A stretch of DNA of 12,605 nt from Histomonas meleagridis 2922-C6/04-290x (GCA_020184695.1 JAANOX010000110.1:1-12605); one strand, 5' to 3'; positions 1,390 to 12,605 are shown, counted from the stretch's first letter. A program made the numbers and translations. Notes: generated by a model not told the origin, from the sequence alone.

Positions 1390-3038
1390 TTATTCTTTAA
1401 ATATACTTAATAAATGTTCATCTATTTTACCTGTTATTTTACCAACTATTGAATTTAATATTTTAGTAGTTATTACTAAATCATCTGATAATTTATTACC
1501 ATCAAATAATACTACATCACCTATTTCATAGTCAGCAGTATTATTTACTCTAAAATAAAAATCTCCATGTGTAGCAAAATCAATAGTATCTTGTAAAATT
1601 TCTACTTCTCTTTTAATAACATCACCTATTGAAGCTTTATATCCAGTTTCATGTTTAGATACACAAATACCTAAATATTCTTTATAAGTACCTGTAGTTT
1701 TAACTGATGGAATACAATCAGTTGATGAAGTATTTGTAACATATTTACCTTCATTGGTTAAAGCATAAACATTACCTGTTAAAAATACTGGTGAACCAAT
1801 TTGAAATTGTGCTAAATCTTCTGAAACAGGAGCATTGTGAATAATAGTTGTATTTATTTGTGCAATACCTCCAGTTCCTTCGAATGTATTAAATGTAGTT
1901 GCGATATAATATATTGTACTAAATATATCAAGAAAAGTACCATCATTTTGTTTCTGCTGTGTTACAGATTCAAAATATAATCTTCCATATATTTTATCTG
2001 CAGTAGGTGTACATCCATAAATTCTTCATAATAATTGATATGTATTACCTGATTCTTCAATTATACTGTGAAATAAAGTTAATTTAGTAGATTCTAAACT
2101 AGTGAATTGACCAGTAGCAGATTTTATATTTCCAGTATTTACAATACCATTAGTATTTACAGAGTACATAATTTTAGAGCAATTTAAGTTATTACAACCT
2201 AATGAATCAAAAGCTGCTGAGTAATAAAAACCATCGCAACCTTTTAGTGTTGGTTTAAATTTCATAACATTCCCTTTACATTGTATTCTAAAACTATAAT
2301 CATTTTCATATCCATCACTAGTATGCATATCTATATAAGGACCTGTTTCTAAAACACCATCGTTTTTAATAACTGCAATTGAAGGAACACTAATATTTAA
2401 ATTTGAATCTGAAGGAGATGAATTTAAAGCAAAACCATTAATTGTTGAACAATGAATATCTTCTGTATTTGAACCTGTAGGAATATCTGTTAAATCATTA
2501 TAACTATGTGTATGATTTGTTGCAGCATATTTTGTATCATGATTATGATCTTTTGAAGCATACTCTTCATGTGTATGTTCTGAGGGTGGAAATTTTTCAG
2601 GTTTATTAGTTAGATCATTATAACTATGTGTATGTTCTGAAAGTGGAAATGTTTCAGGTTTATCAGTTAAATCATTATAACTATGAGTATGATCTGATGA
2701 AGAATAGTTTGTATGTTCATGATATTTTTTAGCATAAATCTCATCATGATTATGATCATTTAAAGATATTTCAGATGTATCTACATTATTAATAGTTGCA
2801 TATTGAATATTGCCATTACTTCCAAAACTTAATAATGATCCAGTTTTCGATTTAAAATCTAATGAATTAGTATTAGCAGTTATTCTCCATGTATTATCTT
2901 TATCATAATCTGCATTATTATGCATATCAATATATTGACCAACTTCTACAACACCATCTTCTTTTAATGTGATAATAGATGGAACATATAATTTTGTATC
3001 GTTTTTATACCTTTCGTAGCATTCTCAATACTAAACAT
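1390..3038 (-). pseudogene. Phage tail-fibre-like protein, copy 1 (~550 aa); frameshift near 3002 and in-frame TGA at 2026-2028
   Basis: ATG at 3038 (MFSIENATKGIK) joins by a 1-nt shift to DTKLYVPSIITLKEDGVVEVGQYIDMH, which runs into the 299-aa ORF. After the TGA the same frame stays open (RIYGCTPTAD...TIIHNAPV...DTIDFATHGDFYFRV...HLLSIFKE*) to TAA 1392-1390. It contains 7 HxH motifs and HTHSYNDLTDKP repeats typical of phage tail fibres. Confidence 0.8.
2570..2694 (-). repeat. 57-bp coding tandem repeat (~2.2 units; 19-aa HTHSYNDLTxKPExFPxSE)
   Basis: Unit starts at 2570, 2627 and 2684. A further dispersed HTHSYNDLTD copy lies near 2486-2515. Confidence 0.85.
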
Positions 3039-3060: not shown

Positions 3061-3402
3061 TTAATAAATTAATAATAATTCTAACATAAAATATTCTGGT
3101 TCAATTTCTTTACCATTCATTTCTTCAAACCATATTTTAAAATTTGGTTTTCTACTTTTATACTCATATTTCTTATATTTAGTTCTATTTTCATTCGTAT
3201 AAATACAAAAATAATCTTCATAATGATCACGTTCAATGAAATCAGCATGCATTGAAACATCAGAAACTAAATATTCCTTAAATTTACACTTACATTGTTG
3301 TACTACTATATATCTAGGATTTTGAGAATCCACATATTCAGGGGGAAATCTATTTTCTTTGAAAGAAGTACAAAAATATGTTTTAGTTGCTGGTTTGTTC
3401 AT
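3061..3402 (-). CDS. Small conserved element-associated hypothetical protein (113 aa), full-length copy
   Basis: Intact ORF with a near-identical inverted paralog at 7414-7728. The motifs YIVVQQCKC, MHADFIERDHYEDYFC, KYKKYEY and FMLELLLIY resemble a multicopy trichomonad repeat-protein family (recalled, not searched). Confidence 0.8.
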   Translation of the reverse strand: MNKPATKTYFCTSFKENRFPPEYVDSQNPRYIVVQQCKCKFKEYLVSDVSMHADFIERDHYEDYFCIYTNENRTKYKKYEYKSRKPNFKIWFEEMNGKEIEPEYFMLELLLIY

Positions 3403-3475
3403 TAAGAAAAATAAATCAAAATATTATGTGAATGGAGTGGTATCCTAGCGGTCGAACTTTTTCTATACTAGTATA

Positions 3476-3614
3476 TACCGTTTTCACATCATGTTGGCCA
3501 TTTTCCGTTTCAATATGGCCAACCGTTTTCTATCGTGAATTTTAAAATTCAAGATTTGAAAAACCGAATTTTTTTTTTTGAGTAAAGCATCTTTTAAATT
3601 CTATGTTGTAAAAT
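3476..3614 (+). repeat. Left terminal inverted repeat of the Tc1-like element
   Basis: ATCATGTTGGCCATT...ATGGCCAACCGTTTT...AAACCGAATTT...AAATTCTATGTTGTAAAAT matches the reverse complement of 4753-4890 at roughly 80% by manual alignment. Confidence 0.88.
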
Positions 3615-3643
3615 AACGTATTTATTCATTATTTAAAATGTGT

Positions 3644-4668
3644 ATGCCTAGATATATATTTCGTGTCAAATATTTAGAGGTTTTAACAAAAACAATTGTA
3701 AATGGTGAAGAAGAACTCACCAAATTATGGATAATAATTTTAATTGTCCACCAATTTTAAATAGAGGAGGTCCTCATCATCAAATCGTTACTCCTGATAT
3801 GGAAGAATTTATTATAAATTATGTGGAAGAAAACAGCGCATCAACACTTCTCGAAATCAAAAATGCTTTATTAGAACACTTTGAAATACCAAATGATCAA
3901 ATATCTTTATCTACGATTCACTGTCATTTGGATGGAAATTTTGTTTTTTATAAAAAGCTTCGCTATGTTTCTGCGAATGCGAATACACCAGAAATAAACC
4001 AACAGCGAGTAAATTATTTAAATCAATTGACAAATTTATCAGAGAGTATTCAACAAATTTACATTGATGGATCAAATTTTACAATTTTGACAAGAAGAAA
4101 TATGGCAAGATCTAAATTAGGAAGAAGAGCAGTTCAATCATCATTAATCGATGGATGTAGAAAAATCAATATTTTAGCAGCTGTTTATCCAAATTATGAT
4201 TGAATATACCATGAGACTGAAACGAATAATGTTGATGCAATTCGATTTGAAGAATATTTTAAAAATTTAATTAATGATTCAAAGACGAAATATTCAAATC
4301 AAAAATTTGTCTGAATTTTATATAATTATTCAATTCATCGACAATATGAACTACTTAAATTATGCCAAGAAGCTCAGTTCGTACTTTTATTCCTACCACC
4401 ATATTCCCCATATCTTATTCCAATTGAAAGATGTATTAGTCAAATTAAACCATATGTAAAAAGATATTTACAAGAAAAAAATCAAATTCTTCTAGGTACA
4501 ATTAATCTTCCTTTTGGGAAAAAAACAGTTGTTCGGTTTCAGATTCTCGAAGTAGCAATTAATGATGCAATTCAAAATGTTACAAGGGAAAATGTACAAA
4601 ATTATATGTATTATTCATACAAATTTTATCCCATGATATTTCAAATGATACCAATCATTATTGAATAA
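3644..4668 (+). pseudogene. DD34E transposase pseudogene (IS630/Tc1 type)
   Basis: N-terminus MPRYIFR... (3644) frameshifts near 3720 into the 158-aa ORF (HTH-like TLLEIKNALLEHF...ISLSTIH, then YIDGSNF). The same frame continues through TGA 4201-4203 and TGA 4312-4314 to FV*ILYNYSIH...LLFLPPYSPYLIPIE...IIIE* (TAA 4666-4668). The second catalytic D reads Y, and 34 residues separate it from the E. Confidence 0.9.
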
Positions 4669-4752
4669 ATACCCTGTTTGATTATTTATATTATTTTATA
4701 GTAAAAATTAGAATGTACATATAAGAAATATCGATATTTCTTAGAACACAAC

Positions 4753-4890
4753 ATTTTACAACATAGAATTTAATAAATGCTAAACTCAAAAAAGAAATTC
4801 GGTTTATTAATTCTTAAATTTTTAGTTTTACAATAAAAAACGGTTGGCCATCTTGAAACGAATAATGGCCAACATGATTTAGAAATGATA
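4753..4890 (-). repeat. Right terminal inverted repeat of the Tc1-like element
   Basis: Reverse-complement match to 3476-3614. Confidence 0.88.
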
Positions 4891-4946
4891 TAGAGATATT
4901 CAATTTGTGGAAATTTCGCTCTCAAATTTTTATCGTAGTGGTCACA

Positions 4947-5088
4947 CTATATGAAAAGTGACACAAAAGTATTATCGTTGCTTTCAAAAAGTTTACAGTT
5001 CATTCAATTTTCGATGCGTATTCAATTTTCCAAACGAATTGTATGTCTCACAAAGCACATTTTGATTTTTGTAGCGAACGGAGCGAGC
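4947..5088 (-). repeat. Conserved non-coding element block, copy A (inverted relative to 7111-7264)
   Basis: Reverse complement reads GCTCGCTCCGTTCGCTACAAAAATCAAAATGTGCTTTGTGAGACATACAATTCG...CACTTTTCATATAG. It aligns without gaps to 7147-7264 at about 75% over ~118 nt and shares the GCTC motif. Confidence 0.85.
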
Positions 5089-5544
5089 TGATGGTGGGGT
5101 CTGAATCTATGATTTTTTTGATTGAATCTTACGGTATTCAGAGATATGACGAAAAATCTAATAAATATAATTCTTAGCCCTTCATATCCAGTTCATCATT
5201 TTCATTAAAAATGTTTTTTGGCTGATTTTGCTTTTTTTTTTTTTATTGTGAGTAGATAAAAAGTAACAAAAATTTAATTGAGTAGTTTATGCGAATGGAT
5301 TAAGGGTCCCTTTAATCGTTTTTCATTCAAATCCAATTGTCACCTATCTCAAAAAGTTGAGAAATTTCTCAAAATATGAATTTCTTGTTAAAAAATTGAT
5401 TTTGGCCATATGCATTAATTCAAATAATCCATACTATAGTGGTGGGATATATTTCTTTATTTATATCAAAATCTGTAAGAGAACTTCTATCCGGACAAGT
5501 CCTTGGTGAAAACTGATTTTAATTCAATAAACTTAATAAACCAT

Positions 5545-5549
5545 TCATT
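5545..5549 (+). promoter_or_regulatory. Putative trichomonad initiator (Inr) element TCATT
   Basis: Matches the TCA(+1)Py(T/A) consensus 21-25 nt upstream of the ATG at 5570, the usual position in Trichomonas genes. The motif is short and could occur by chance. Confidence 0.5.
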
Positions 5550-5569
5550 TCAAAATCAAACTTTCCCAT

Positions 5570-6538
5570 ATGGGGAGCCACAAAATAAGTTCTGATGAGG
5601 AGCAACGCGAATTCAAGCGTTCTAATTCAAAGCCACTCATTTCTAGTTCACCTAGCGAACAAGTCATCCCCAAGAAAGCTACACTTTACCAAGTCAAATC
5701 ATCGTTATTATCAACTCGATCTCTATTTATTTCTGCATTCCTTACCATATCACTAATTACCACATGCTTTGCAAATGTTTACATGGGTTCAAGAGTTGTT
5801 AATATGAAATCTCTTCCTGATGTGATAGCAGATTTAGCTCCTTCATTTGCCCTTTACCGTTCCTCAGGATTTCTTACATATTTTGGAGTTCCTGGTATTA
5901 TCACCATCATATTAATATCTTCTTGTGTTTATTACACATATAATTGTTATAACATCTCAAATATTCGTCGGAGTCTAATGCTCTTTGGATTGTCTCTTCT
6001 TTTTAGGTCTTTGTGCTCAACATTTACCACCATTGCACCACCATGCACAGGATATGCCAATTGTAATTGCCTCATAAATTTTGGCAATATCATCAAAAAA
6101 CACTCAGTCCTTAAGATAGCTCTTGTGTACTTCTTTACGTTTGGTTATGGAACAAAGTCAATTCCATCATGCAATAATGCATTTATGTCTGCCATGTTCT
6201 CATTCCAAATGTGTTTGTTTTTACATGTATATTCGATCCAAAAGAAGACAATTTCCAAAGACAAACTTCGCGGTTTCACATTTTTGTTTTCGGTATTATT
6301 ATTCACATCTGCGGTCAGTAGCATTTTAATCAGAAATGAAAGCACAGTTAGCATAGTACTATCATTAGTTTTCACTTTGTTGGTAAATAAGTTGATGTGG
6401 TGTGATGAAGAAATGGTTAGTGTCGACTACGGCCCATTTGTTACAAGTTCATTTGGAAGATTTTTCACTTGGTTAAACGCAAATGAGCCCGAAATGAGTA
6501 TGAGAAAGTCACACGACAATTTTGGCGACAAAATATGA
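5570..6538 (+). CDS. Multi-pass membrane protein, sphingomyelin synthase / IPC synthase (PAP2-related) family-like, catalytic motifs degenerate
   Basis: Intact 322-aa ORF with about 6 hydrophobic segments. Motifs: SLPD (D1-like), IRRSLMLFGLSLLFRSLCSTFTTIAPP (D2-like), a Cys-containing luminal loop, SCNNAFMSAM at the CGDxxFSGH position, IRNESTVSIV at the xRxHYTxDV position, and a terminal GRFFTWL. Confidence 0.72.
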   Translation: MGSHKISSDEEQREFKRSNSKPLISSSPSEQVIPKKATLYQVKSSLLSTRSLFISAFLTISLITTCFANVYMGSRVVNMKSLPDVIADLAPSFALYRSSGFLTYFGVPGIITIILISSCVYYTYNCYNISNIRRSLMLFGLSLLFRSLCSTFTTIAPPCTGYANCNCLINFGNIIKKHSVLKIALVYFFTFGYGTKSIPSCNNAFMSAMFSFQMCLFLHVYSIQKKTISKDKLRGFTFLFSVLLFTSAVSSILIRNESTVSIVLSLVFTLLVNKLMWCDEEMVSVDYGPFVTSSFGRFFTWLNANEPEMSMRKSHDNFGDKI

Positions 6539-6963
6539 AAATAAAAATGTGAGTTCTGTCATAATTATAATTTTTTTCTTAAAATAATTTAATCAATCAA
6601 TGGAAGTTAATTAACTCGAATATCATTGATCTCCTTATCTATTTGGAGGAATCAAGTTTTTTATCAAATTTTCACCCAAATGACTTTCCAATATTATAAA
6701 TGCATATTGATTGAATTTTTTTTCTTGAAAACATGGAAAATAAAAAAATCCTGAATAATATGTAATGGAATCTAGAATGAATATTCAATAACAATATAAT
6801 CATAGAAAATAAATTTTGTCAGAAAATAGGAATAAAATTTTGAATTTGTTTTTTAATGACATGATTTCAGAGTGACGAACAGATTTAGTTTAAATTTTTT
6901 GGAAACCGCTGTTGTCACTTTATTGAAATACAAGTAAATTCCATGTATGGTAGGTATATAATG

Positions 6964-7014
6964 AGGTCGGGACAATTCCAGGGACCCTAGGGTCCTCGTG
7001 ATCATTCCCGACCT
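6964..7014. repeat. Nested palindrome: 9-bp outer arms with a central perfect 14-bp palindrome
   Basis: AGGTCGGGA (6964-6972) pairs with TCCCGACCT (7006-7014). GGACCCTAGGGTCC (6982-6995) is its own reverse complement. Confidence 0.88.
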
Positions 7015-7027
7015 TAAGTTTTCACTG

Positions 7028-7104
7028 GGGGGATTTCCGGGGTCTGAGGCATCCGGAGGGGTCCGAAGGGCACCTCCGGATGCCTCAGACCCCGGAAATC
7101 CCCC
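7028..7104. repeat. Perfect 32-bp GC-rich inverted repeat (hairpin/cruciform)
   Basis: GGGGGATTTCCGGGGTCTGAGGCATCCGGAGG (7028-7059) is the exact reverse complement of 7073-7104. The 13-nt spacer can fold further around CC-GAA-GG. Four more pairs (CACT/AGTG) follow a G-G mismatch. Confidence 0.96.
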
Positions 7105-7110
7105 GAGTGT

Positions 7111-7264
7111 GCTCGCTCCGCTCGCTGCTACAAAAATCACAAAAATCAAAATGATTTTTGTGAGCCATACAATTCGTCTGAAAATTTGAATGCGCATTCT
7201 ATTTTGAGGGAACGCGATACTTTTTAAAAGGAACGATGGCACTTTTATACCACTTTTCACATAA
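7111..7264 (+). repeat. Conserved non-coding element block, copy B, including a 12-bp stem hairpin (7137-7163)
   Basis: Begins GCTCGCTCCGCTCGC and is homologous to the reverse complement of 4947-5088. Contains TCACAAAAATCA-AAA-TGATTTTTGTGA. Confidence 0.85.
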
Positions 7265-7413
7265 ACCTATCAAAAACCTCGTATAACCAACACGAATTGT
7301 CCCCGGTTATGTTTGGTCGGACATTTATCCTATTCAATTTATCTTCGGTCGGAGGTTAGTAGTCAAAAAGCGACGGTTATTGTTTGGTCGCATGGCAAAC
7401 TTTATTTTTATAA

Positions 7414-7728
7414 ATGCTTAAACCTGTGACTAAAACGTATTTTTGTACTTCACAAAAAGAAAACCGTTTTCCGCCTGAATTTGTGGATTCTCAAAATCCT
7501 AGATATATAGTAGTACAACAATGTAAGTGTAAATTTAAGGAATATTTAGTTTCTGATGTTTCAATGCATGCTGATTTCATTGAACGTGATCATTATGAAG
7601 ATTATTTTTGTATTTATACGAATGAAAATAGAACTAAATATAAGAAATATGAATATAAAAGTAGAAAACCAAATTTTAAAATATGGTTTAAAAAAATGAA
7701 TGGTAAAGAAATTGAACGATTGACATAA
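7414..7728 (+). pseudogene. 3'-truncated paralog of the 113-aa element protein (104 aa)
   Basis: Homology to 3061-3402 stops abruptly after GAAATTGAAC (7717). The conserved C-terminus PEYFMLELLLIY is replaced by RLT*. Confidence 0.8.
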
Positions 7729-7916
7729 CAAGAATTCTTTTTTTATTCAAATAATATTCTTCAACGAACTAATTGGTATCTTCCGATTCATCAACTTCTT
7801 CTTGAATTATTTTAATTACATCTCGCAATCTTTTTTCCGCTTCTTTTCTTGTATCTTCTATATCTTCGATAATAAATATTCATATTCTTTCATCATTTTT
7901 TCGCACTTTGCACACT

Positions 7917-8593
7917 TCAGTGAGTGATATTTTGCATTAAATTTATATAAACCTCAGCCGAAAAATTCATTGAAGCTTCAATGTCTTTATCAACATCATA
8001 CATTTCAATGTTAAATTCATTAAATTCTTTACCGCGCAAATCCTTGTTATTTATTCGCCAGCAATACTTGGATAATAATTCATAGAAATTATCAATTATC
8101 TTTAATTCAGACCTTTTACGTAATTTTAAGGCGTCAGCATTATATGTCAATGCTTTACTTTCAAGTATTGAGTGATTGCTGAAAAAAATTTGAGTTTTTC
8201 TGTTGATTTTTCTGATTAACGCTTTTATTTCTGTTGAATCATTTTTTCAATCTCGATTATTGTAAAACTTTTAACTGAAACATCAAGAGTTAATTTCGGT
8301 ATATTTACAGCAGGAATTGATTTCGCAGATCTGAAAATTTGCTCTAAATATTGTTGGTTTCTTTTTAAGTTAACTTCAACCGGAAGTTGATGATTTAAAA
8401 TTTTGTTTTTGCATTTCTCAATAGTATTAGCATAATCATTAACTGAATCATCAATTTTATTGTCAATCTTTATATTATTTAATTTAGTTAAGCATAAAGC
8501 AGACGTTTGATTTTCGGAAACGAGTGTGGAGCAAGAATTTTTCATTAACATTTTTATAGAAATTAAAAAAATAAATTTTTTAAAAACTAGCAT
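7917..8593 (-). pseudogene. Hypothetical ~225-aa protein split by a 1-nt deletion in the homopolymer near 8243-8248
   Basis: The 122-aa ORF (IEIEK...) joins a stop-free frame NDSTEIKALIRKINRKTQIFFSNHSILESKALTYNADALK..., which is the 77-aa ORF, if one A is added to the A6 run. No recognisable family. Confidence 0.55.
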
Positions 8594-8644
8594 TAATTTT
8601 TTAAAGTTAATTTTTATTTTTTTTATTTTTTTATTTTATATAAA

Positions 8645-8941
8645 ATGGAAAGATTTTTTGATATAAATAAAATAAATGAAAATATTGACGAAGAAATAGA
8701 AACTGCAAAAATTCATTTAAATGAATTATATATTCATTTAATGACTACATTTATTGTAGAAAATGATTTAATAGAAAAATCACCATTAGAAATTTGTAAA
8801 CAATATTTAAAATTTATCGAACCGAAGAATAAAAGAAGTAAAAAGAATAAAAATATTATCGCAGAACAACATATAAAAATAAATGAAGTGTTAATTTATG
8901 TGAATGAATCATTAAAAAGAATTTATGAAATTATTGCCTAA
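8645..8941 (+). CDS. Hypothetical 98-aa charged, probably helical protein
   Basis: Intact ORF preceded by a T-rich tract and TAAAATG. It is divergent from 8593 and convergent with the fibre gene. No recognisable family. Confidence 0.55.
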   Translation: MERFFDINKINENIDEEIETAKIHLNELYIHLMTTFIVENDLIEKSPLEICKQYLKFIEPKNKRSKKNKNIIAEQHIKINEVLIYVNESLKRIYEIIA

Positions 8942-9901
8942 ATGGCATAAAATGCCTTGAGGCTCTAAGAGCTGAATACAGCTAACAGAGAATCAGAAGA
9001 TATAATTGCAGTAACTTTTCCAATAATCATATTATTTATTTTTGCCCTTAATGGTGTTTCATCATCTAATATTGATTAATCATATAGTACAGTATCACCA
9101 ATATTATATGCTGATGAATCATTAACTTTAGAATAATAATCTCCGTGAGTTGCAAAATCAATTGTATCTTTATTGATAGATACATCTTGTTTAATGGTAT
9201 CTCCTATTTGAAAAATTTCTCCAGCTGTATGTTTTGCGATACAAATTCCAATAAATTCTTTATAAGAACCATTGCTTTTTACTGACGGAATACAATTAGT
9301 AGAATCAGTAACTTAAGTATAATTATATTAATCATTTAATTTATATACGTTACCTGTAATAAATACAGGACAACCGATATTGAAATCATTTAATGTTAAT
9401 GTTTCGTTTATCGGCGCATAATGCACAATAGTATTATTAATCTGACCTCCACCACTACTTGATATAATAGCTTTTCTGTACGTGTCGTCTGATACATGCC
9501 AAAATCCTAATTCATTTTCATATGATGTCATACGCCAATTATACATTTATGGTGCTTCTGTTGAATTATTATGATGAACGAAATCTAAAAATCTTCCTGT
9601 TAATACAGAATTTTGATAAGGAACAATATCAGCAGGTTGATGAGTATGAGATGATGGAGTATATGTTGATGGTTTATTAGTTAAATCATTATAACTATGA
9701 GTATGTGTGTTTAAAGAAAAAATATCAACAGGTATATCATTAATAGAAATACAATTTATATTACCATCATTTCCATTTAAACTAATAACACCATCATTAT
9801 TATCAAGTTTACCGAAATACATAACATTGCCGGCAGTTCTTATTCTCCAAGAATAATCACTATTTAAATCATTATTATCATGAAAGTCAATATACTGTCC
9901 A

Positions 9902-10066
9902 ACTTCCATTACACCATCTGATTTAATAGTCGCGATTGATGGAATATTTACTGTTGAATTAGAACCTCCGCCAATACTGTTTGCAATATAATATCCGTTA
10001 ATGAAATTTGCGACAAGACTACCATTAATAGCTATATCATTATTAATAATTTCATGTGTGTGATTT
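9902..10066 (-). repeat. 165-bp intragenic direct duplication (second copy at 12399-12563)
   Basis: Both copies encode NHTHEIINNDIxINGSLVANxINxYYIxNSIGGGSNSTVNIPSIATIKSDGVMEV with few nucleotide differences. Confidence 0.9.
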
Positions 10067-10249
10067 AACGAAGAGTATTTATCATCAATATTATGTGTCG
10101 TTAATGAGTATTCATTATGTGTATGATTTGACGAAGAGTATTTATCATTATGATTATGTGTTGTTGATGAGTATTCATTATGAGTATGATTTAACGAAGA
10201 GTATTTATCATCATGATTATGTGTTGTTAATGAGTATCTTTCGTCATGA
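10061..10249 (-). repeat. 63-bp coding tandem repeat x3 (21-aa unit THNHxDKYSSxNHTHNEYSxT)
   Basis: Unit starts at 10061, 10124 and 10187. Each unit carries two HxH motifs, one degraded to HNI. Confidence 0.92.
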
Positions 10250-12398
10250 TTATGATATTTTAATAAGAATTCTTCAAGTAATTTTCCATTAATTGTTTCA
10301 CAATATAAATTACCATTAACATCATTATCAATAGTATCATGAGTATGATTTTTAAATGAAAAGTTACCAATAGATATATCATTAATAGAAATACAATTTA
10401 TATTACCAATAATATATATATCACTATTTACAATAAGTTCACCATTAATAGTAATAGCATAATTAAATTCTGTATGATTATGATCTAATAAAGAATATAT
10501 ATCATCATGATTATGTGTTGTTAAAGAAATATTATCAGTGTCAATGCCATAAATGCTATTACAACTAATATTACCGTTTCAAAATATACTCACATAATTG
10601 CCAAATACACCTATTTAAATTCTAATAGAATCACCCGGCACTGCATTAGTTCTATGAATAAACAATCCTTTATAAATATTTGTATCATTTGAATATTTAT
10701 CACAATCAATATTGATATTACATCCTGCTGTCAAAATTTCACATGAAATATCATTACCTACTAATAAATCTTGTTCAATCTTAGTCCAATCGCCATATTC
10801 ATTATATGATATTCCTGTTAAAGCCTTATTAATATCAGTTAAATTATCATTAGTTAAATACTGATCATGAGTATGATTTGTTAAAGAAAAGTTATTAGTA
10901 TCAATACCATTAATAATTGTACATTCTATATTACCATTTATTTTCACATCTTGATTAATTAACGTGTAAATTTCATAAATATCTTCTTCTTCAGTAGTTT
11001 CGACATAATCTTTATTATAACTAATACCTGTTAATTTATTGTTAATATTAAATATATCATTTTTTATCACGGATAATTCATCTAAATCAATACCATTAAT
11101 AGTAAAACATTCAATATTATCATTAACCTTCAAATCTTGATTAATTGACGTGTAGATTTCATATATTTCTTCCTCCTCTTCATTAGTTTCTAATAAATCT
11201 TTATGATAAGTTATTCCTGTATAATTATTTAAATCAGCAGCTATTAAATAATTATCATGTTTATGATTAACGAAGCGTTTATATATCTGACAATCAACTA
11301 ATAAATAACCTAATTCATTTGTTCTTTGTCCTTTATAAACATCTTTATAATAATAATACTTCAAATTTTTAAATATAATATTCATTTCTGGAAATAGATT
11401 TATTAAATAATTATATTCATTAAATTCTTGGTCTATATCTTCAGCGTCTGGAACTTCTAAATCTTCCAACATTTCACCTGTCGATATATCATATTCATCA
11501 AAAACTACTGATTTCAATGATGGTAACGGTAAATAACCTTTTGACTTCATAACATTAATACCAAAACTATTATATAAAAATCCTGCCCACCCAAAATTTT
11601 TTATTTGACTTACAATTTGAGCTATAGTATATGCTGTATCAGCAGCTGTAAAAAATGTATCTATTATATCAAATATACTATCAACAAAACTTTCTTTATA
11701 TGTAGATTCGCCGTCTTCTCCTGGAGGTCCCATTAAAATTTCTTGTATGTCTTCATCATCAATGATCATTTGTTTTGTTAAATAGTATTCTGTTTTTAAT
11801 TCTCCATCATTATTAATTATACCATAAGTATGTCCGCTATCCTCTAACATGATACTATTACCATTAGGAAAAATTTATTAATAAATTATTTTCAGTAATT
11901 CCTTCATCAGTAGTATTATCATAAGTTGATATACTGACTCCGTTTTCAAATGATATAACGTCTCCGGTAGATAAAATTCCGTCTTGAACTAATACTATTT
12001 CTTCTGTGTTAATATCATTAATTGTATTATTAACTATAATATCTTGATTTATTGAGGTATATTTTTCAGAAATATCTTTTTCTTCATTAGTAATTGTTTC
12101 TTTATTATAATATATTCCGGTTAATTTATGATTAATACTCTCTAAGTCAGTATTAGTTATATAATCACTATGAATATGATTCAACGTAGAGTATTTGTCG
12201 TCGTGATTATGTGTGTTTATAGATATATCATTTGTAGAAATATTATTAATACTATTTACTGTTATATTACCGTTATTATTAAAACTAATCGTCCTTCCAC
12301 CTTTTGCTTGAAAACTTAATGTATCGGTTATTGCTCTAATTCTCCACGTATTATCTTTATTATAATCATCTCTATAATGAAAATCAATATACTCACCG

Positions 12399-12563
12399 AC
12401 TTCCATGACTCCATCTGATTTAATAGTCGCGATTGATGGAATATTTACTGTTGAATTAGAACCTCCTCCAATACTGTTCGAAATATAATATTCGTTAATG
12501 GAATTTGCAACAAGACTACCATTAATAGATATATCATTATTAATAATTTCATGTGTGTGATTT
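12399..12563 (-). repeat. 165-bp intragenic direct duplication (partner of 9902-10066)
   Basis: Same sequence block as 9902-10066, read directly. Confidence 0.9.
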
Positions 12564-12605
12564 TTTAATGTAAAATCACTGATAGAATAACCATTAATGG
12601 TACAC

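Follow-up and report, generated by a model that had tools for sequence, protein, structure and literature searches.

Paired GC-rich palindromes and a GCTC box at the probable tip of the terminal inverted repeat in a family of endogenous Maverick/Polinton-like viruses in Histomonas meleagridis

Models of end replication for Mavericks, Polintons and polinton-like viruses (PLVs) have been borrowed from adenoviruses and phages. The origins of adenoviruses, tectiviruses and phi29-like phages are protein-primed, and their inverted terminal repeats open with a short direct repeat that serves sliding or jumping back. The present work concerns a cluster of three hairpins and a GCTC-repeat box in the genome of Histomonas meleagridis, a parasite of poultry; the stretch of DNA analyzed, hereafter the window, is the whole of contig JAANOX010000110.1 (12,605 nt). 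A Metamonada group of Maverick/Polinton elements (Polintoviricetes) has been described in five parabasalids (Bellas et al., 2023; PMC10120064). Terminal palindromic ends of parabasalid Mavericks are described neither in that study nor in the other papers that could be searched. In a preprint of July 2026, palindromes were reported in the extremities of the terminal inverted repeats (TIRs) of endogenous virophages and of one PLV subtype in Halocafeteria seosinensis (bioRxiv 10.64898/2026.07.28.741278). These palindromes occur mostly in elements without a protein-primed polymerase B (pPolB), and the authors suggest hairpin priming (bioRxiv 10.64898/2026.07.28.741278). Here, we assign window positions 6949-7126, with a probability of roughly 0.85, to the outer TIR tip of a Maverick/Polinton-like endogenous virus family of H. 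meleagridis.

This assignment derives from the comparison of several copies, all known as integrated or assembled double-stranded DNA sequence. As a query for further copies, a spurious open reading frame (ORF) crossing the hairpins led to two annotated H. meleagridis 'proteins' and from these to two further contigs. A third contig was reached through the cluster of a fragment resembling a major capsid protein (MCP); this cluster counts 19 annotated members, and the contigs bearing them are as long as 771 kb. A preliminary description of this DNA had raised the possibility that the hairpin is single-copy; at least five further copies or remnants of the module were found on the other H. meleagridis contigs (L067a, L067b, L068, L069L and L069R; Table 1). 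The module consists, in order, of a 15-nt tip, palindrome 1, an 8-nt spacer, palindrome 2, the GCTC box and hairpin 3. Its tip, GGTAGGTATATAATG, is identical at all six H. meleagridis ends, and the outside flank is different at each. In every copy, the hairpins start 15 nt inward of a sharp boundary, that is, at the fixed distance from the junction of element and host that had been looked for as support. The 15 bases that separate this boundary, or the target-site duplication (TSD), from palindrome 1 are invariant and non-palindromic at the six ends.

The one complete copy examined for a TSD lies on a 771-kb chromosomal contig. This element (L069 6455-13497; 7,043 bp) carries the module at both ends in inverted orientation, encloses an MCP-like gene broken by frameshift, and has a direct 6-bp duplication, GCATAG, immediately outside both termini. 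Because TIRs together with a 6-bp TSD are the insertion signature of Mavericks and Polintons, the cluster can be placed at a TIR tip. Thus, the earlier suggestion that the cluster forms the terminus of an endogenous virus-like element is upheld by both ends of the TSD-flanked L069 element. The accompanying idea of a departure from Mavericks is not, since this complete copy has inverted termini and a 6-bp TSD and relatives encode pPolB. The TIR is about 0.3-0.8 kb long; that on the right of the window matches L067 4059-3290 over 782 nt at 90% identity and L068 979-563 at 87%. Deletions starting within the palindromes are found at both ends in the window (winR and winL) and in L067a, L067b and L069L.

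Table 1. Features of the window, with copies of the terminal module on other H. meleagridis contigs; element assignments are the probable ones discussed in the text.
Feature	Location	Strand	Remarks
Fibre gene A	1393-3030	-	HxH repeats; conserved C-terminal domain; one in-frame stop
113-aa penton-like gene, copy A	3061-3402	-	intact
Nested Tc1/mariner-like transposon	3482-4885	+	own 133-nt TIRs; within non-coding part of the left element's TIR
Remnant of terminal module, second element (body leftwards)	4948-5105	-	box 5073-5088 kept; tip and palindromes lost
Host gene, sphingomyelin-synthase-like membrane protein	5570-6538	+	intact; between the two element ends, outside the element
TIR, left end of Maverick/Polinton-like element (body rightwards)	6949-7717	+	whole stretch repeated in other copies
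Terminal 15 nt GGTAGGTATATAATG, element boundary	6949-6963	+	opens with direct GGTA-GGTA repeat
Hairpin/palindrome 1	6964-7014	+	9-bp outer stem, 5-bp inner stem
Hairpin/palindrome 2	7023-7109	+	42-nt arms, C-GAA-G apex
GCTC-repeat box GCTCGCTCCGCTCGCT	7111-7126	+	conserved in sequence
Hairpin 3, AT-rich	7137-7163	+	12-bp stem, AAA loop
Inner TIR, non-coding, conserved	7164-7413	+	blocks common to L004, L058, L060 and L062; includes block GGTCGGAGGTTAGTAGTCAAAAAGC
113-aa all-beta gene, copy B	7414-7728	+	3' end cut where the repeat stops
Tandem fibre-like genes	8968-12604	-	HxH repeats; gene nearest 8968 with four in-frame stops
Module copy winR	window 6949 onward	+	
Module copy L067a	L067 4059 downward		
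Module copy L067b	L067 12007 onward		palindrome 1 complete, deletion after it
Module copy L068	L068 1039 downward		
Module copy L069R	L069 13497 downward		
Module copy L069L	L069 6455 onward		deletion beginning at the centre of palindrome 1

The segments of the module are conserved to different degrees. Mean identity among the four full copies is 100% for the 15-nt tip and for the hairpin 3 core, 97% for the GCTC box, 88% for the inner non-coding segment and 83% for hairpin 2, the last value rising to 89% when apex orientation is matched. Among the 42 pairs of hairpin 2 (alignment A7), 29 are invariant, 7 have changed on both sides and 0 on one side; the remaining 6 include unpaired cells, which concentrate at the apex and at symmetric bubbles (TC/TC, TCC/TCC). 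Palindrome 1 has 37 pairs (alignment A8), 2 of which have changed on both sides and, again, 0 on one side. The covarying stems that had been named as potential support are therefore present, with 9 two-sided and 0 one-sided pair changes in the two palindromes together. One 5-bp stretch of the hairpin 2 stem exists in three versions, each fully complementary. The apex of hairpin 2 (columns 34-54) in L067a and L068 is the exact reverse complement of that in winR and L069R. As the TC/TC bubble (columns 24-25 and 63-64) holds one orientation in both apex classes, this inversion is confined to the apex and does not involve the whole hairpin.

In the window, the three hairpins and the GCTC box are present as located in the preliminary description. 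Folded as single-stranded DNA (ssDNA), positions 6950-7270 reach -85.2 kcal/mol, compared with -38.6 +/- 4.0 for shuffled sequences (z = -11.7; 0 of 100 shuffles as good). Hairpin 1 of the window is a decayed form, with an asymmetric loss within its 5' arm, of a perfect GC-rich palindrome of 60-77 nt that other copies carry. The core of hairpin 2 is a perfect 32-bp stem (7028-7059 with 7073-7104), topped by an imperfect, short apex with a GAA loop. Overall, the GC content of the window is 27%, and positions 7020-7133 form the contig's sole GC island at a threshold of at least 64%. The GCTC box lies outside the stem of hairpin 2. As GCTCGCTCCGYTCGCT, it occurs twice in the window, at 7111-7126 (+) and 5073-5088 (-), with 0 occurrences expected by chance, and the minus-strand box carries one change relative to the other. 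Thus, the second copy reported earlier is indeed kept; it is, however, inverted rather than direct, and all that it retains of hairpins 1 and 2 is 9 nt from the 3' arm of hairpin 2. The hairpin 3 of this left-arm remnant is degenerate, the remnant is without a fold signal (z = +1.0), and the GC-rich hairpins adjoin the right arm only. A blastn search of 6900-7420 against phage records found nothing, and exact-pattern scans of IMG/VR with the hairpin arm and with the GCTC box plus hairpin 3 gave no match.

Related ends were found on metagenome contigs. L060 is the closest of these relatives, with a penton-like protein family 85% identical to that of the window. It has the same order as the window: a GGTAGGT tip, a GC-rich hairpin block, GCTCGCTTCGCTCGCT, hairpin 3 and the same non-coding blocks. 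Its GC hairpins are unrelated in sequence to those of the window; one has a perfect stem of 12 bp and a GAA loop, the other a 9-bp stem and a GGA loop. The GCTC box is present as GCTCGCTTCGCTCGCT in L058, L060 and L062, and the hairpin sequences there are unrelated as well. The stem of hairpin 3 is kept at 8 bp in L004 and L060, where one A-T pair is replaced by G-C. The ends of both L060 and L028 start with GGTAGG. In L028, which is more distant, a 31-bp hairpin follows after a few bases, its loop being GAA/TTC (z = -7.6). L035 terminates in a GC block whose mini-hairpins have GAA and GGA loops. A hairpin closed by C-GAA-G near the end therefore recurs in four lineages whose stems are unrelated, in agreement with the attention given earlier to GAA triloops closed by C:G. 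GNA triloops with this closing pair are very stable DNA mini-hairpins. Five independent short-read contigs (L004, L058, L059, L061 and L062) stop no more than ~20 nt from the GCTC box. Illumina assembly seems to be interrupted by the GC-rich palindromes at the tip of the element, which would be why short-read assemblies of these elements end at this point. In the window, nothing related to the ORF flanking the L060 terminus was found.

Gene content provides a further line of comparison. The 113-aa protein may be called penton-like by its size, fold class and position. Its AlphaFold model is a beta-sandwich (pLDDT 84), and structural matches of the jelly-roll type are weak (TM 0.4-0.6, E of at least 1e-3). 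Fifteen homologues (43-85% identity) are encoded on short gut-metagenome contigs, and a further 43 loci were found in metagenome collections, many of them from the human gut; a search for the penton-like family in IMG/VR found nothing. On the metagenome contigs, a fibre gene always follows the 113-aa gene, and a conserved protein of 524-579 aa precedes it in most. The 706-aa fibre protein of L003 has a C-terminal domain 62% identical to that encoded by window 1393-2025, and tblastn of the fibre against phage records found nothing. Protein-primed polymerase B (Pfam DNA_pol_B_2) is encoded in L028 (3.8e-40), L029 (1.5e-37) and L051 (1e-31), and the L028 contig bears pPolB, the penton-like gene, a fibre gene and a terminal hairpin together. 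A DUF5906 NTPase is found in the relative L036. As predicted from sequence, the gene content of the relatives (penton-like, fibre and pPolB) fits Maverick/Polinton-like viruses.

Some further observations concern these genes. The two 113-aa gene copies in the window are near-identical over ~245 nt (7470-7715 and 3101-3346), and the adjoining non-coding repeat is ~78% identical; this near-identity points to recent conversion or to selection on the predicted ORF. In some human-gut relatives, a deoxynucleotide monophosphate kinase (DNMK) gene is located just downstream of the penton-like gene (L008 2748-3374; L015 3838-4464), a cargo that is unusual for a Maverick-like element. One human-gut subgroup with a pair of MCP-like and penton-like genes has unusual neighbours (L047 200-2000; L041 3-1649), namely either a bacterial-type insertion sequence (IS) transposase (DDE_Tnp_1/DUF772) accompanied by hairpins of terminator-like form, or a phosphoglucomutase gene.

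Several points weigh against placing the cluster at the TIR tip of a Maverick/Polinton-like family, or against the roles proposed for it. In H. meleagridis, pPolB is represented by one weak 57-aa match beside L067a and is absent from the window. Among ~60 ORFs on partial contigs, no rve-type integrase, FtsK/A32-type packaging ATPase or adenain-like protease was recognized, and the putative MCP-like neighbour of 539 aa has no sequence match in Pfam or PDB. The covariation score of hairpin 2 is 0.151 compared with 0.091 in shuffles, and 9 of 500 shuffles reach 0.151; these statistics are modest because only four full copies of hairpin 2 are available. In addition, two-sided changes in a DNA palindrome can arise by template switching between the arms without selection. 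Lastly, the origin, binding-site and structural roles that the segments may have are deduced from position and from the pattern of conservation.

The possibility of template switching underlies one rival explanation, according to which the palindromes are functionless by-products of end repair or of switching between the arms and are carried along by a proliferating defective element. The module-bearing copies of H. meleagridis may all descend from a few deletion derivatives, quasi-palindrome correction yields two-sided changes without selection, and the palindromes are frequently deleted. Accidental annealing has also been named as a possible origin of the Halocafeteria palindromes (bioRxiv 10.64898/2026.07.28.741278). 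We nonetheless consider this explanation unlikely, as the architecture is kept in L060, L028 and L035 despite unrelated stems, each with a C-GAA-G hairpin near the end, which is hard to account for without constraint. Rather less credence is given to hairpin-primed replication without a Rep protein, the alternative model proposed for Halocafeteria virophages and PLVs with terminal palindromes. The palindromes of those elements lie in TIRs beside TSDs, a position similar to that seen here (bioRxiv 10.64898/2026.07.28.741278), but they mostly accompany replication genes other than pPolB, whereas the relatives of the present element have pPolB; moreover, an invariant 15-nt tail and a terminal repeat lie outside the palindrome. 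A parvovirus-like rolling-hairpin origin, the reading favoured in the preliminary description, would have self-priming hairpin ends, with the GCTC repeats as the binding site of an HUH Rep nickase. Mismatched bubbles in the terminal GC-rich palindromes, the occurrence of both apex orientations and a tetranucleotide-repeat box adjoining the stem are all in keeping with such an origin, and H. meleagridis has many CRESS Rep-like endogenous viral elements (PMC9615429). In the window and the related elements, however, neither Rep nor HUH nor Parvo_NS1 was found in any element ORF scanned, the only HUH-type match being a Helitron_like_N ORF 8.8 kb outside the L068 terminus, and three groups of relatives carry pPolB. 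The palindromes begin 15 nt inside the invariant end, which leaves the 3' end unable to prime by folding back, and hairpin 2 does not flip as a unit, since its TC/TC bubble fails to invert with the apex. The ends are, furthermore, TIRs with a 6-bp TSD, as in insertion of the integrase type. A rolling-hairpin origin is consequently very unlikely.

The chances of two other explanations are slimmer still. An independent miniature inverted-repeat transposable element (MITE), foldback element or Helitron end, inserted beside a virus-like block, had been considered in the preliminary description. Such an insertion would find a precedent in the other transposons that have entered this region (Tc1/mariner-like in the window, pogo-like in L028), and L068 does carry a Helitron_like_N/Rep ORF. 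That ORF, however, is 8.8 kb away and outside the L068 terminus, and the hairpins are always bounded by the same tip of 15 nt on one side and the same GCTC box on the other. No TSD was found around hairpin 1, hairpin 2 or the pair in the copies found, all of which sit between the GGTAGGT tip and the GCTC box, nor was a hairpin pair with its own TSD seen away from tip and box; in L069, the TSD flanks the entire element including the hairpins, not the hairpins alone. With TIRs, a 6-bp TSD and palindromes of 60-87 nt, the definition of a Helitron (no TIRs, no TSD and a short hairpin shortly ahead of a defined 3' end) does not apply either. It is just as hard to credit that the cluster is an assembly artefact of nanopore fold-back reads, or else a terminator or a gene for a structured RNA. 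The contig, from a Flye assembly, is short, the five metagenome assemblies mentioned above are broken at the GC-rich hairpins, and one L060 hairpin is followed by a T run. Yet both strain assemblies contain the module, as do a polished 771-kb contig and Illumina metagenome contigs; it is located at the extreme end, outside all genes and in both orientations, and no Rfam family reaches threshold.

Given a TIR tip of a Maverick/Polinton-like family, a mechanism for its parts can be proposed. The invariant 15 nt and the terminal repeat would be the start site of the protein-primed polymerase, because sliding or jumping back of such a polymerase requires terminal reiteration, here GGTA-GGTA. The same invariant tip may be the site of integrase action. 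The GCTC box and hairpin 3, both conserved in sequence, are putative binding sites for a protein of the element or the host. By contrast, the two GC-rich palindromes appear to be conserved in structure only and would come into play once the end becomes single-stranded or forms a cruciform, for example by stabilizing or marking the end during strand-displacement replication. Hairpin formation in vivo would account for the two-sided changes, through arm-to-arm correction, as well as for apex inversion and for the deletions centred on palindromes. It is possible, if on balance doubtful, that these parts make up a composite end, in which a protein-primed tip is combined with two obligatory C-GAA-G-capped hairpins and the GCTC box, and the hairpins on displaced strands serve end replication or resolution. 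If true, such an end would be intermediate between protein-primed and hairpin-based end replication and would explain the apex inversions.

The remainder of the window reflects the arrangement of two elements around host DNA. A sister-strain contig of 4,433 bp is 99.95% identical to window 3344-7776. Within a large interrupted inverted repeat, 3099-3415 pairs with 7401-7717 (93%) and, in a second pairing, 4948-5088 with 7111-7263 (78%); an inverted copy of the right TIR is thus contained in 3099-5088, its left arm being split by the Tc1/mariner-like insertion. The two element ends face each other across a 1.9-kb host segment and belong to two decayed deletion-derivative copies. The sole annotated gene on the contig, that for the sphingomyelin-synthase-like protein, is host DNA, as indicated by full-length homologues in Tritrichomonas foetus and Trichomonas vaginalis. 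Its membrane protein is unrelated to the 307-aa product encoded upstream of the penton-like gene in the relatives. Pfam searches of the window ORFs gave no significant family, and Rfam and tRNA scans of the window found nothing. The transposase frame of the inserted transposon comprises 338 codons with three in-frame stops; as all three are TGA, an alternative genetic code was first suspected. Translation with table 4 merges some ORFs, but it was dropped because TAA/TAG still terminates the fibre genes and the host, a parabasalid, uses the standard code. A pogo-like transposon (Pfam DDE_1, 30-43-nt TIRs) is located beside the terminal hairpin of L028 (618-2331) and also in L049 (3380-5093), and transposons seem to land in or beside these TIRs repeatedly.

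Additional features were observed inside and outside the repeats. The inner TIR contains the direct repeats CGGTTATGTTTGGTCG and CGGTTATTGTTTGGTCG at about 7313-7395, ~60 nt apart and with TCGGTCGGAGG in between; they are iteron-like in look, and L069L retains both in slightly changed form. Two other palindromes in the window differ in kind from the GC-rich terminal hairpins, namely an AT-only imperfect palindrome of 94 nt between convergent ORFs (8552-8645) and a (TA)n palindrome close to the contig start (45-78). Directly outside the L067a terminus, L067 4060-4253 is a fibre-gene fragment with an HxH repeat, so L067a sits in an older copy of the same family. Outside the L068 terminus are genes of the KilA-N and DUF3839 families as well as a Helitron_like_N/Rep fragment (L068 4931-5629, 7076-7627 and 9814-10413, respectively), and window 7712-8576 is 87% identical to the L068 DUF3839 region.

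The end described here shares traits with several known types of viral terminus. Like protein-primed origins, it has a short terminal direct repeat, an invariant tip and auxiliary sequence elements further in. To our knowledge, long GC-rich palindromes directly behind the tip are not a feature of protein-primed origins; unlike them, the present end has such palindromes, and the apparent likeness is one of end sequence. With parvovirus ends, which carry a Rep-binding repeat, it shares in general layout GC-rich palindromes with bubbles, an asymmetric part found in two orientations and a repeat near the stem. It differs from them in that no Rep was found, the relatives are double-stranded DNA (dsDNA) elements with pPolB, the palindrome is set off from the very end, the box lies outside the stem and only the apex inverts. 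Poxvirus telomeres likewise have mismatched bases in terminal hairpins and exist in two inverted-complementary forms, flip and flop (PMC8956199). There, the whole duplex turns around in a covalently closed telomere (PMC8956199), whereas the present hairpins are local and internal to the TIR, with unique sequence on both sides.

The closest resemblance in overall organization is to Mavericks and Polintons, which share TIRs, a 6-bp TSD, multicopy decayed chromosomal insertions, pPolB in relatives and a small beta-sandwich gene that comes after a large, conserved capsid-like one (PMC10120064). Unlike these, the family in H. meleagridis has TIR tips that hold two long GC-rich palindromes, a GCTC box and a third hairpin, as well as fibre genes with HxH repeats, and no integrase was recognized in the partial contigs. 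The elements of Halocafeteria offer the nearest parallel for the palindromes themselves: in both cases, integrated small dsDNA viruses of protists have palindromes at the TIR extremity beside the TSD, with a suspected link to replication. There, a single 52-nt palindrome is found; here, two (60-77 and 87 nt) follow in tandem behind an invariant 15-nt tip, and the family, from a different supergroup, is linked to pPolB. The present work also adds comparative evidence in the form of two-sided changes, apex inversion and an architecture shared across lineages. What is new is therefore that two tandem palindromes and a conserved box together follow an invariant tip in a lineage linked to pPolB, with comparative evidence for constraint. 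The defined end module offers a concrete object for comparative genomics across parabasalids and a precise marker for delimiting elements in Histomonas, in Dientamoeba-like gut metagenome contigs and in Trichomonas. After the Halocafeteria virophages and PLVs, terminal palindromes are now seen in a pPolB-linked lineage as well, which argues that they are not tied to one replication module.

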